The notes beneath the pieces were generated by a model, which had not been told where the DNA came from, did not search any database, and saw only the letters and a list, made by a program, of their open reading frames with translations. Positions 16,491 through 24,407 of a stretch of 64,000 nt of DNA are shown piece after piece. The translations under genes and the position numbers were made by a program. Positions within the stretch are counted from its first letter, which is position 1. Each line of letters starts with the position of its first letter. This DNA is from Schmidtea polychroa (Eukaryota): assembly GCA_044892525.1 (NCBI GenBank), contig CM097886.1, positions 179,230,312-179,294,311 on the forward strand, given 5' to 3'.

Positions 16491-16857
16491 TTAACGACAA
16501 TATATTTTCCTTGGCGTGCATCTTGATTTAATGCCAACAGGTCTGTAGAATAGAATGAAGCATGAAAACCAACGGTTCCAGTAGAAACTACAGAATCTCG
16601 AAGCACAAAATAGGTATCGTTTTACTATTTTAGCTTCATTTTCCAGTTTCGCATCATTAACTAAATTAATTAATTAATTAATTAACTAAAATTAATTAAA
16701 AAATATAATTAATAGTATGTGAGTGTGAGATAAACGTACAATGATCCAATTCTTTTCCCGTCACTTCCGCTTCATCCTTTGAATCTTGATCCGTTTCCAC
16801 ATCACAGAAAATCGGAACAATCACCAATAGTCCTAAAAGTAAATAGAAAAGCTTCAT
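16491..16857 (-). CDS. Secreted Cys-rich prepropeptide A, copy 1 (95 aa; exons 16857-16740, 16660-16491)
   Basis: MKLFYLLLGLLVIVPIFC-DVETDQDSKDEAEVTGKELDHFNDAKLENEAKIV-KR-YLFCASRFCSFYWNRWFSCFILFYRPVGIKSRCTPRKIYCR*: signal peptide, acidic propiece, dibasic site, phase-1 GT-AG intron, spliced length 288 nt. Confidence 0.88.
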
Positions 16858-16884
16858 GATTAAAATCGTGTCGGTTCTGTGTGA

Positions 16885-16892
16885 TATTTATA
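16885..16892 (-). promoter_or_regulatory. TATA box of peptide gene A; equivalents for B (18147, +), C (23045, -), D (24057, +)
   Basis: TATAAA(T/A)A-type box 32-42 nt upstream of the ATG in all four paralogues; individually weak evidence in AT-rich DNA. Confidence 0.55.
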
Positions 16893-17344
16893 CTAATAAT
16901 CAAAATGAACTTATTATTTTAATTATTAGATTCTATTACTGATAAATAGTAATGATAAGGCCCTGTCGGTTTTCAAATTAAAAAAATAAAACAAAATGAA
17001 TGAACTTAAAAATATAATACAAATAAATAAAAAATTATATATATATTTAAAAATTTTAAAAAAGATTTTATGTTAAAAATTACACATGGTCTTGTTGCGG
17101 GGGTTCAATTGAGAGTCCCGGAATAGTTTTGGCCTGATTAATAAAATGTTGATGTATTATTTTTGTAATAAATTTGTTTTATTTAACAATTTTTTTTCTT
17201 TTTTTTTACCAGTAAATTTTTTTTTATATTTCACCATTGACTGATTTTGAACTTGAATTAACATTTTATTAATTTCTAATTATAAATCAAAATTTTTATT
17301 TATTTAGTACTGAAACTGGAAAAATTAGAAAAATGCAATTTTTG

Positions 17345-17790
17345 AAATTAATTAAAAATTAATTAAAAATTAATTAAAAATTAATTAAAAATTAATTAAA
17401 AAGAAAAAATTTTTTCTTTCATTCTTTTTTTTATTTATGAAAATCTCTTTTAAATAACTTTTATAAAAATGGTTATAAAAATTAATTATATTAATTAGAA
17501 ATTAATTAATAATTAATTAAAAAGAAAGAATTCTTTCTTTCATTCTTTATTTTATTTATGAAAATCTCTTTTAAATAACTTTTATAAAAATAGTTATAAA
17601 AATTAATTAAAGTAATTAGAAATTAATTAAATATTAATTAAAAAGAAAGAATTCTTTCTTTCTTTCATTCTTTATTTTATTTATGAAAATCTCTTTTAAA
17701 TAACTTTTATAAAAATGGTTATAAAAATTAATTAATTTAATTAGAAATTAATTAAAAATTAATTAAAAAGAAAGAAATCTCTTTTAAATA
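17345..17790. repeat. AT-rich tandem array: 11-bp TTAATTAAAAA units followed by three ~120-bp units (also in copies 2 and 3)
   Basis: Repeated TTTATGAAAATCTCTTTTAAATAACTTTTATAAAAAT(G/A)GTTATAAAAATTAATT; five 11-bp units in copy 1 vs three in copies 2 and 3. Confidence 0.85.
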
Positions 17791-18178
17791 ATTTTTAAGT
17801 AATTATTGTCAGTAGTATATATGGGCATCAATCATTTGGTATCCGGTATCATGGATTTGTTAAAGACTGCTTGAATCCTTTACTTTAAAAATTACTACTT
17901 CTGTAGGAGTATACTCATAGGCAACATACCCCAATATACTCTTCTCGTATCCTTGTTGGGTCCGCGTACCTTATACCTAAAAAGTAATCAAGTTTATGAC
18001 ATTTTTAATTGAAGTAAAATAGATATTTAAAATAGACATTGAACTATATGAAGTATATGAAAATGAAGATTTTATCTTTTGCTTATGTAACTTTTCAAAG
18101 TTGACATGGATAAATAATAAGTTCATCAACGTCAACAGCATCTATATATAAAACCCTCTGCCAGTTACCAGAATCATA

Positions 18179-18524
18179 ATGATGACGGCCTTTTATCTTA
18201 CGATTCTTTTTACACTTTTATTATCGGTTTATGGTAAGTATGAGTATGAGGAAATGGTAGAACACGAAAATGATTTTGAAGTGAAAAATTTAGTCGAGGG
18301 TAAATTTAATTTAATTAATTGAAATTAATTTGATGTTAATTTTTTGTGAAGATCAAGAAGAAATAAGCGATGAAGAGCAATCGGGTGAAACTAAACGAAT
18401 TAATAGAAGAAACTTTTGTGGTTTAAGACAATGCCGTATCCTTTACCGAAGATGGTTCACTTGCACGATATATCTCTACCGAATAGGTTTGATTTGTAAA
18501 CCTCGCTCTTTTCGTTGCATCTAG
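18179..18524 (+). CDS. Secreted Cys-rich prepropeptide B, copy 1 (97 aa; exons 18179-18299, 18352-18524)
   Basis: MMTAFYLTILFTLLLSVYG-KYEYEEMVEHENDFEVKNLVEDQEEISDEEQSGET-KR-INRRNFCGLRQCRILYRRWFTCTIYLYRIGLICKPRSFRCI*; phase-1 intron, TATA upstream. Confidence 0.88.
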
Positions 18525-21696: not shown

Positions 21697-21823
21697 TGGA
21701 TGCTCGTGTTAGGTGTGGTAAAATACTTCTTGTTTTCATAAATAATTATTATTTTATTATTTTCTTATAATAATGTGTTGCAACTAATTAAAATTCTTTT
21801 ATTTAAAATGGATCATTTTCATC

Positions 21824-21976
21824 NNNNNNNNNNNNNNNNNNNNNNNNNNNNNNNNNNNNNNNNNNNNNNNNNNNNNNNNNNNNNNNNNNNNNNNNNNNNN
21901 NNNNNNNNNNNNNNNNNNNNNNNNNNNNNNNNNNNNNNNNNNNNNNNNNNNNNNNNNNNNNNNNNNNNNNNNNNNN
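21824..21976. repeat. Masked variable tandem repeat (N run; 138 N at 38043-38180, 168 N at 54250-54417)
   Basis: Same flanks in all three copies; lengths 153/138/168 differ by multiples of 15. Confidence 0.7.
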
Positions 21977-22690
21977 CGGATGTCTAACATTTGAATAATA
22001 TAAACTCTATTCTTACTTTTAGCAAGTATCATTTATGTTGTTTGAATCAGACTCGTTTACAGCAGTTTATTTCAAACAAAATCTGATTATTCTTTTTTTA
22101 AGTTTTATTTTAATCTTTTCGGTGATAATAATTTGATAATTTTCAACTTTTTTTTATTTTTAATTTGATAAAATTTTTAATATTTATTTAATTCATATTT
22201 TGGATAATTTTATATTTTAATTAAAATTTTTCATTTGTACTATTTTTTATATAATTATTTTATTTCTTTTCGTACAAATACAAATATCGAAAAAATTATG
22301 AGAAAATTAAAATAATACAATTGACACTTTTTTATATTTTTCAAAAGAAAACCGTTATAACTCACTATCGGATATATATTAATACGTCATACGTCTATCA
22401 CGTTGCGTCAATAACGCATTATGTTGAATAACTGGGGTTGAGGGTTACGTGAGTATTCTGAGTTTTACTGAAATATAAAAGATATGCTTGTATAATATAA
22501 CCTTAATTCTTTCACAATATAGCTTTATATTATATTACAATACACTGATGCTTCACTAAAAGTCAGATCTATGGTCTATTTATCATGATCTATCACTTAC
22601 ACTAAGTGAATGAAGATGATTTAAATATGAACGTGACTACAGAAATATGTATTTGTTAAACAGAAATTCCCATCCGGGCGTTTGTATTGT

Positions 22691-23011
22691 CTAAGCACAT
22701 TGGCATACTCCAGGGACACATGGTCCAATTGGTCGATAATAGAAATATACCCAACAAGAATAGTGTTTGTTCATAGTAACATTGAAAAACCTTGTAGCAC
22801 ACCATTTCGCAGGTCCAAATCCATTTGGATTAAATGGATTGAAATGCCGATCTTCTATAAACAATATAAATCAAAAATAATATTAATTATTATTATTATA
22901 ACCTTCTTGATCTTCAGAAAAGTCATCACTTTCTTTTATTTGATTTGTCTCTTTTGCACATATAATTGATAAAATGAAGCAACATCCGAACAAAAGTAAA
23001 TCTAATTTCAT
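22691..23011 (-). CDS. Secreted Cys-rich prepropeptide C, copy 1 (90 aa; exons 23011-22903, 22854-22691)
   Basis: MKLDLLLFGCCFILSIICA-KETNQIKESDDFSEDQEEDR-HFNPFNPNGFGPAKWCATRFFNVTMNKHYSCWVYFYYRPIGPCVPGVCQCA*; 48-nt phase-1 intron, spliced length 273 nt. Confidence 0.86.
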
Positions 23012-24098
23012 TGTTGTTGATTCGGTCTTGTTGAGATATTTTATAATAATTTTGCGTAGCTTGTTATGAATGACCATACCAGGGTTTCAAGCGTGGGCTC
23101 AGTGTCACCAATAACACATTCCTAGTCAAAATGCTAAACTGTTTTTCTTATTTTATTTCACTTGAATTTCATGTTATGACAAATTTTATCAAATTTTCTG
23201 AATATATTTCTCATTTATACGTCACATTCTTCAGCAGGGCCGGATAGGTCCTCAGGCTAAGAAGGTCGAAGTCTAGGATCTCATTTAGTTAAATGTATTT
23301 AATCTAAATTTTTACTCAAAATAAATAACAAAACAAAATGTAATATAGATATAAAAAATAGGAGCAAAATATTTTGAAAAAACAAAATCTGAAAAAACAA
23401 AATGTAATATAGATATTCCTCTTCTATGAATATTCTATGAATATTCCTCTTTTTCATACATGCCTTTGTACGCGCCATGTTCTTAACAGTTTGGCAAGTC
23501 CATTTGAATATAATAAATTTTTATTTTCTTCAGACATCTCAAGCAAACATTATTTGATAATAAATTTACATTATCTCTAATTACAAGACACTCAAAATTT
23601 GGATAGAAGAATTTAGCAATATTTTTAAATTTGTATTCCGCATTGATTAAATATTAATCAATTAAATGATAAGCCTCTTGCTGAGAAGTATACATTAAAT
23701 AAAATCAATGAATTTTCAACTATAAAAATAATCCATTTCAATTTCCTTGAAATTTTATGTAGTTGAAATTTCTTCGCACCAAATATACTTCGCACAAAAA
23801 GTCTTAAATTATCAATTAATTGTTTAACAATAATAATAATAATAATAATATTATTATTTTTTTTTATTATTATTAAACTAATGATTTAAATTAGATAATT
23901 AAATATTCATATTATTTCAATTGTTTTTTTATAAATTCCAACATTTCTTAAAATATCACCATTTGTAAATAAATTACATTCAACCTACTAACAACAATTT
24001 GTGGCCTACGACCATTTAGTGAAACAACCGTAAAGTATTGCTTACCGAATTTTTGATATAAATAGATTCTTTTACACATTTCACTAAACAAATCAAGC

Positions 24099-24407
24099 AT
24101 GCAATTTATTGTGCTCTTCATATCACTCGCTGTCTGTCCATTATTACTTGACAATTTCGTGAAATCGGACGAATCCATGGATAACGTATTAAAAGGTAAC
24201 TTGAAATTTATCATTGGATTTATATAATTTATATTAAATTCAGTAAATGCATATGCGAGTCCTGTAAACACGGAACCGAATCGAGTATTCTGTGGTTTTC
24301 GCACTGCAAAAGTGAATTTTTATTTAGACTACAAATGTCGGGTACCTTTCTATAGGGATGCTTCAACTAACGGTCCATGTTTACCTGACAAATGCCAATG
24401 CTTTTAA
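24099..24407 (+). CDS. Secreted Cys-rich prepropeptide D, copy 1 (86 aa; exons 24099-24195, 24244-24407)
   Basis: MQFIVLFISLAVCPLLLDNFVKSDESMDNVLKVNAYASPVNTEPNR-VFCGFRTAKVNFYLDYKCRVPFYRDASTNGPCLPDKCQCF*; 48-nt phase-1 intron, spliced length 261 nt. Confidence 0.86.

Follow-up and report, generated by a model that had tools for sequence, protein, structure and literature searches.

An odd number of cysteines in the mature chain characterises a class of host-defence peptides that dimerise covalently. Mouse CRS peptides have 9 or 11 cysteines and form covalent homo- and heterodimers in vivo, which widens their repertoire, and rat rattusin is a C2 homodimer (PMC5366907). Distinctin and halocidin are natural covalent heterodimers (PMC2931633). 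Two further reports describe an interchain disulfide as necessary for the membrane activity of ant venom peptides, namely those of the Mp1a/pilosulin type and Tr1a of Tetraponera (PMC7400207, PMC13486460). In aphids, the BCR1, BCR4 and BCR5 genes lie within 20 kb, and BCR motifs include CX3CX3-5CX4-6CXCX11-13C and CX3CX6CX21-25CX6CX3C (PMC9604261). Here we describe a cluster of four small genes, A to D, in a stretch of 64,000 nucleotides from Schmidtea polychroa (assembly GCA_044892525.1, contig CM097886.1, positions 179,230,312 to 179,294,311 of the forward strand; hereafter the window, in whose own numbering all positions are given), each of which has a predicted mature core with five Cys and so an odd count. 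As our best explanation, offered tentatively and as a single account that includes the role of the fifth Cys, A to D would be real paralogous genes of an orphan (lineage-restricted) family encoding secreted, disulfide-stabilised peptides, in which the fifth Cys would join two chains.

Gene A is on the reverse strand (16491–16857), with exon 1 at 16857–16740, exon 2 at 16660–16494 and the stop codon at 16491–16493, and gene B is on the forward strand (18179–18524; exons at 18179–18299 and 18352–18521, then the stop), where a second possible phase-1 donor after 18233 would give a shorter leader. Gene C is again on the reverse strand (22691–23011; exon 1 at 23011–22903, exon 2 at 22854–22694, then the stop), and gene D on the forward strand (24099–24407; exons at 24099–24195 and 24244–24404, then the stop), such that the A–B and C–D pairs both stand head to head. 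In all four, a phase-1 intron of 48–79 nucleotides (nt) separates the exon for the leader from that for the core; no open reading frame (ORF), splice site or TATA box is disrupted, and TATAAA lies 32–42 nt before the ATG in each. In every product, a leader resembling a signal peptide and an acidic stretch come before a core of about 40 residues, which holds the conserved five Cys. In A, exon 1 encodes the signal peptide and an acidic propeptide, and the core, which follows a KR site, has 41 residues, a net charge of +8, 12 aromatic residues and its odd Cys five residues after the first invariant Cys (C1+5). The core of B follows KR and RR sites, is 37–41 residues long with a net charge of +8 to +10, and likewise has five Cys, with the odd one at C1+5. 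Dibasic sites are absent from C and D, whose odd Cys lies five residues after the third invariant Cys (C3+5); in D the signal-peptide cleavage site is ambiguous and Cys13 lies in the leader.

Pairwise tblastn within the 64-kb window gave E-values of 5e-9 for A–B, 1.5e-5 for A–C, 1e-4 for C–D and 2e-3 for A–D, a family resemblance that is therefore beyond chance, and homology is also backed by the common intron phase and the common position of TATAAA. A six-frame scan of the window found no further members besides A–D and their tandem copies. Aligned, the four cores have C, R, C, Y, R, C, P and C as invariant residues, and the Cys spacing is C-x4-C-x9-C-x10/13-C-x6-C in A/B and C-x14-C-x11/13-C-x4-C-x-C in C/D. 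The original prediction, made from the letters of this stretch, held that every core has four invariant Cys plus one extra and that there are two subtypes, each with its own position for the fifth; gene models and alignments agree with it on both counts in A, B, C and D. It was also right to place the extra Cys of A/B at C1+5, where the residue is Phe in C and Ala in D, and the extra Cys of C/D at C3+5. The Tyr of A and Arg of B that it gave for this second position are instead at C3+6, the residues at C3+5 being Ile and Phe, respectively. Paralogues within each pair are only about 40% identical yet keep the odd Cys, a degree of retention which suggests that the residue is in use.

The mature boundaries are predicted ones, and the odd Cys count depends on this predicted processing. 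Leaders contain one Cys in A, three in C, one in D and none in B, which brings the count for the full precursor to an even 6, 8 and 6 in A, C and D, respectively. It could thus be supposed that the odd count does not exist in the secreted product, either because a leader Cys is kept and pairs with the fifth (Cys18 in A, Cys19 in C, Cys13 in D) or because the models or genes are non-functional. This is, in our judgement, the least probable of the explanations weighed here. The even precursor totals would suit it, as would the lack in D of a canonical signal-peptidase site after the hydrophobic core (by inspection) and the absence of A–D from every protein database searched; however, the core of B has five Cys although its leader has none, in A, C and D one leader Cys falls opposite Gly19 of B in the alignment, the residue that probably occupies position −1 of the signal-peptidase cut, cleavage at KR would also take off the leader of A, and all four genes are intact in the respects listed above. 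Probably, the Cys in the leaders of A, C and D are lost when the signal peptide is cleaved off.

In precursors of host-defence peptides and toxins, a cationic peptide usually comes after an anionic propiece. The long acidic leaders of A and B end in KR directly before the core (B also has RR), and we propose that a proprotein convertase would cut at these sites, freeing very cationic, aromatic cores (+8 to +10) that may be of a membrane-acting kind, whether antimicrobial or toxin-like. In C and D the acidic N-terminal extension would stay on; without its signal peptide C carries a net −2, against +4 for the core by itself. An NVT N-glycosylation sequon is present in C (22781–22789, reverse strand), right after the position equivalent to the odd Cys of A/B, and the cores of A, B and D contain no sequon.

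AlphaFold2 (AF2) models, computed from an input alignment of the four paralogues only, were all-beta for both peptides modelled, with a predicted local distance difference test (pLDDT) score of 92.8 for A (strands at residues 2–12, 16–25 and 34–40) and 89.4 for C (strands at 2–12, 14–23 and 31–37). Both cores are thus predicted, with confident pLDDT, to be three-stranded antiparallel beta-sheets. The following geometry was read from the strand limits assigned by DSSP. The loop between strands 2 and 3 has only 4–8 residues, so a meander (strand order 1-2-3) is the sole option, and the three-residue turn at 13–15 in A would set the register of the first hairpin at i+j=28. With residue 25 opposite residue 34, Cys40 (C4) would face Cys19 (C2) and C2–C4 would be a cross-strand bond; C1 (residue 4) could reach C3 (residue 33) via the loop, and C1–C4 and C2–C3 would be beyond bonding distance. 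The four invariant Cys would, on this model, form two intrachain bonds, most likely C1–C3 and C2–C4. The odd Cys of A/B (residue 9, strand 1) appears to lie directly across from C2 on the same face as C4, and that of C/D (equivalent to residue 38, strand 3) would lie two residues before C4, again on that face. The two odd positions would occupy opposite edge strands, with strand 2 between them and an offset of two residues, which on ideal sheet geometry (4.8 Å between strands, 3.4 Å per residue) puts them about 12 Å apart.

At about 12 Å, an intrachain disulfide between the odd positions would be too long. This bears directly on the proposal, central to the original prediction, that C1+5 and C3+5 were once joined within the chain of a six-Cys ancestor, that each subtype lost the opposite partner, and that A/B–C/D dimers could now rebuild the bond between chains as a two-component system; the ancestral bond is not borne out by the AF2-based geometry, in which the odd positions are on the outer strands of the meander. 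The proposal has several features in its favour. The odd-Cys positions are subtype-specific, and in the hypothetical six-Cys order the odd ones would be Cys II and V, a common six-Cys pairing being I–IV, II–V and III–VI. A single base change would turn the Phe codon of C at C1+5 (TTC), or that of B at C3+5 (TTT), into a Cys codon, there is some charge complementarity between the strongly cationic A/B cores and C with its acidic extension (net −2), and the four genes lie in a single cluster. Besides the distance, it has against it that two gains of a Cys are as cheap as two losses, that a shared promoter motif ties A to B and not A/B to C/D, and that no six-Cys relative was found in the searches described below, which has little weight, as no relative of any kind was found. 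Overall, we regard a lost and rebuilt bridge as highly doubtful.

The equal cost of gains and losses depends on how the four genes are related. Among the three possible quartets, A,B|C,D was the best by likelihood comparison, with an expected likelihood weight of 0.68 (0.63 with the two odd-Cys columns masked), but A,C|B,D was not rejected (0.28–0.32). A 13-mer exclusive to A/B and a promoter block exclusive to C/D speak for the former. For the latter speak the leaders of A and C, which are 45% identical, and the head-to-head arrangement of both pairs, as expected from block duplication of one divergent pair; a search for a DNA-level trace of such a duplication between A–B and C–D gave only AT-rich low-complexity matches. 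Given A,B|C,D, it makes no difference in cost whether a six-Cys ancestor lost Cys twice or a four-Cys ancestor gained them twice. The A,C|B,D tree would require four parallel changes or gene conversion within pairs, and this cost would point to co-evolution of partners within the head-to-head pairs. We propose that each odd Cys has its own history of origin or retention, and that the two would not be halves of one former intrachain bridge.

The role that we favour for the fifth Cys, short of conviction and largely by analogy, is that of a spare thiol through which covalent dimers form. We favour it because an odd Cys that is kept between paralogues of about 40% identity is probably in use, and because an interchain disulfide is the best-documented use of such a residue in comparable peptides. 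Mechanistically, the fifth Cys would be a surface thiol beside the C2–C4 bond, available for an interchain disulfide. The predicted sheet also has two faces that are both rich in aromatic residues (tallied on the register given above), which makes a monomer unlikely to be happy in water.

The main competitor is a monomer. Its fifth Cys would either remain unpaired, as a thiol that is reactive, binds metal or senses redox state, or pair within the chain in some other way; one such pairing in A/B would be C1+5 with C2, with C4 left unbonded, and another an exchange with the C2–C4 bond. The register of A suits such a scheme, as it would place Cys9 opposite Cys19 and Cys40 on the other side of Cys19, giving three Cys in a row on one face, and the odd Cys of A/B may simply compete with C4 for C2. 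However, aromatic-rich sheet faces would favour self-association, and free thiols are uncommon in small secreted peptides, being subject to retention in the endoplasmic reticulum by thiol-mediated quality control. We consider a monomer somewhat unlikely. Several considerations nevertheless weigh against dimers. The strand register and disulfide pairing derive from the DSSP limits of AF2 models built on four sequences; the odd Cys of A/B faces the invariant C2 in these models, and could form an intrachain bond instead; the leader Cys of D, with its non-canonical cleavage site, might be retained, giving an even count; and a secreted venom cystatin of assassin bugs has five Cys with a genuine free thiol, a precedent for the monomer (PMC7822193).

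If the fifth Cys does make covalent dimers, the promoters have some bearing on the choice of partners. The 13-mer ATAATAAGTTCAT occurs in the promoter of A at 16905–16917 (reverse strand), 48–60 nt before the ATG, with TATAAA at −35, and in that of B at 18114–18126 (forward strand), 53–65 nt before the ATG, with TATAAA at −32; its exact matches are only at A and B and at their copies in the tandem units described below. The promoter block common to C and D is absent from A and B. No κB-like immune sites were seen in the promoters of A–D. A 121-bp tandem repeat (17353–17784; 3.5 copies, 91% matches) lies in the middle of the 1.3-kb intergenic region that holds the A and B promoters. The most likely partner would be a second copy of the same peptide or the product of the co-regulated divergent neighbour, which would give A–B or C–D pairs, with cross-subtype pairs possible; homodimers or co-regulated neighbour pairs seem more likely than the cross-subtype A/B–C/D pair of the original prediction. 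In an extended form, A–B and C–D would each be the two chains of one covalent heterodimer, or all four peptides would combine freely into up to 10 dimers, making a combinatorial two-chain effector system, which we think quite unlikely.

Searches for relatives were negative throughout. Pfam gave no match to the four exon-2 products at E<=10, and a hidden Markov model of the four peptides had 0 matches at E<=0.001 among 1.84 billion representative proteins. With A and C as queries, a word-indexed search of 5.8 billion proteins returned no candidates, metagenome contigs yielded no confirmed relatives, and viral contigs, by which a polydnavirus-type origin was also tested, gave no match. A sequence search of the PDB returned only 2lix_A, a scorpion K+ channel toxin of 27 residues, which aligns with the C-terminal half over C..Y..G.C..G.C.C at a non-significant level (E=0.07 when the profile was the query, 0.31 for C by itself); this toxin has a CxxxC helix motif, whereas CxxxC is absent from A–D and AF2 predicts no helix. 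Foldseek comparison of the A and C models with the PDB gave nothing at E<0.1 and no small disulfide-rich peptide among its matches, the best-ranked (non-significant) fragments being antiparallel sheets, e.g., of cystatin/affimer and PAS proteins. The family looks new to the databases searched, although small eukaryotic genes that lack annotation are scarce in these collections, and the absence of relatives is therefore weak evidence; with no relative at all found, the lack of a six-Cys one says nothing either way.

Known classes were also considered. Membership of the cysteine-stabilised alpha-beta (CSαβ) class of defensins and scorpion-toxin-like peptides, in which a helical CxxxC is bonded to CxC of a beta-strand, was rejected, as CxxxC is absent, CxC occurs only in C/D, AF2 predicts no helix and Pfam is empty; the helix-plus-hairpin fold of this class, which had been a first guess, was ruled out by the all-beta models. 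An inhibitor cystine knot (knottin) needs six Cys in three nested bonds, and the cores have five, so at most two intrachain bonds. Comparison with alpha- and beta-defensins, whose three-stranded sheet is held by three disulfides with a spacing typical of the family, found a three-stranded sheet predicted for A and C, a different number and spacing of Cys and no defensin match in Pfam or Foldseek. The Cys spacings of A–D fit no aphid BCR subfamily motif (PMC9604261, Table 3).

The cluster is part of a 16.2-kb unit (A, B, a Ly6-like gene, C and D) that is present three times head to tail, at 14722–30956, 30957–47160 and 47161 to about 62683, with 99.3–99.96% identity. In the second unit (cluster at 32720–40611), A (32720–33086, reverse), B (34386–34731, forward), C (38895–39215, reverse) and D (40303–40611, forward) are identical to those of the first, and in the third (cluster at 48924–56851) A (48924–49290, reverse), B (50590–50935, forward), C (55132–55452, reverse) and D (56543–56851, forward) are identical except for V12I in the D leader. 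Since the peptide genes are identical across copies bar this one change, the copies are not independent evidence. The triplication is either very recent or a duplication made in assembly or scaffolding. A degenerate satellite of TATTATTT-like units, with a GC content of 11–12% and T-skewed, stands at the end of each unit (28984–30958, 45188–47162 and 61389–63593); the window as a whole has 11–32% GC outside one retrotransposon.

The Ly6/Quiver-like gene (21233–21696, forward) lies between the A–B and C–D pairs and is outside the peptide family. Members of the Ly6/uPAR (Quiver) family have a three-finger domain with about 10 Cys, a CN at the C-terminus and a hydrophobic tail that acts as GPI signal. 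This gene has two exons with 5+5 Cys (10) and ends in CN followed by a hydrophobic tail, and its exon 1 matches Pfam QVR at E=1.5e-4 with 23.1 bits, under the gathering score of 27.3. A (TTA)29 microsatellite (21164–21251) reads as about 24 Leu at the start of an ORF that continues into the first Cys-rich exon of this gene; either the Leu run serves as signal peptide, or it is not coding and the true exon lies downstream of it. Between the stop codons of the Ly6-like gene (21696) and of C (22691), at distances of 128 and 715 nt, respectively, a run of N marks an assembly gap (21824–21976). This gap is intergenic and touches no exon or intron of A–D, and the ORFs that cross it consist only of X; 3′ untranslated sequence of the Ly6-like gene and of C, which converge, could be hidden in it. 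The second and third units have gaps at the same relative place (38043–38180 and 54250–54417), so continuity of the flanks cannot be judged from the other copies.

Upstream of the three units is an apparently intact BEL/Pao long terminal repeat (LTR) retrotransposon (5092–12839), whose LTRs (5092–6036 and 11895–12839) are 99.7% identical. Its gag-pol ORF (6648–11903, 1751 residues) has Pao peptidase, reverse transcriptase and integrase domains, and the polyprotein is 38–44% identical to its best database relatives, the named relatives all being insect proteins at about 30%. A ubiquitin domain (PF00240, E=3.7e-24; 6340–6678, forward) is directly upstream of, and overlaps, the start of the gag-pol ORF, and positions 1–649 repeat part of this ubiquitin/gag start in inverted orientation (ubiquitin at 409–630, reverse), with 95% identity to 7142–6495; a ubiquitin-fused retroelement is unusual. 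Each LTR also holds most of a long forward ORF (5429–6328, 299 residues, and 12187–12882, 231 residues), whose common stretch ends in RWFRFI; neither ORF has a Pfam match. Exons of a major-facilitator-type transporter (2180–4536, forward; weak MFS_1 match, E=1.6e-3) are interrupted by several assembly gaps. Rfam had no match in the 64-kb window, and the protein collections searched do not contain its own proteins.

Compared with known systems, A–D share with CRS peptides and rattusin the small size, secretion, clustered paralogues, a signal followed by an acidic propiece and an odd Cys count, and, as in A and B, a cationic nature (PMC5366907, PMC2931633). They differ from them in having no sequence kinship (Pfam and PDB being empty), another Cys spacing and another host lineage, and dimers in A–D are putative. 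Like the dimeric ant venom peptides, A–D would be secreted with an interchain disulfide joining two gene products or two copies of one. Those ant peptides are mostly helical and have few Cys, whereas A–D are predicted to be all-beta, with two intrachain bonds and a spare Cys. With defensins and aphid BCR peptides they share a similar size, a signal peptide, cationic charge and a beta-sheet core, and with BCR genes the occurrence as orphan tandem clusters; unlike both, they have five Cys rather than 6 or 8, no predicted CSαβ helix and no significant Foldseek match. Monomers with a free thiol, should A–D prove to be such, would also be unusual among small secreted peptides. If the fifth Cys does link chains, the locus would offer a small and easily synthesised system for the gain and retention of odd Cys and for the co-evolution of divergently transcribed neighbours, and the cluster would be a counterpart of the mouse CRS system, in which few genes give many covalent dimers, built on unrelated sequence and a confidently predicted all-beta fold.

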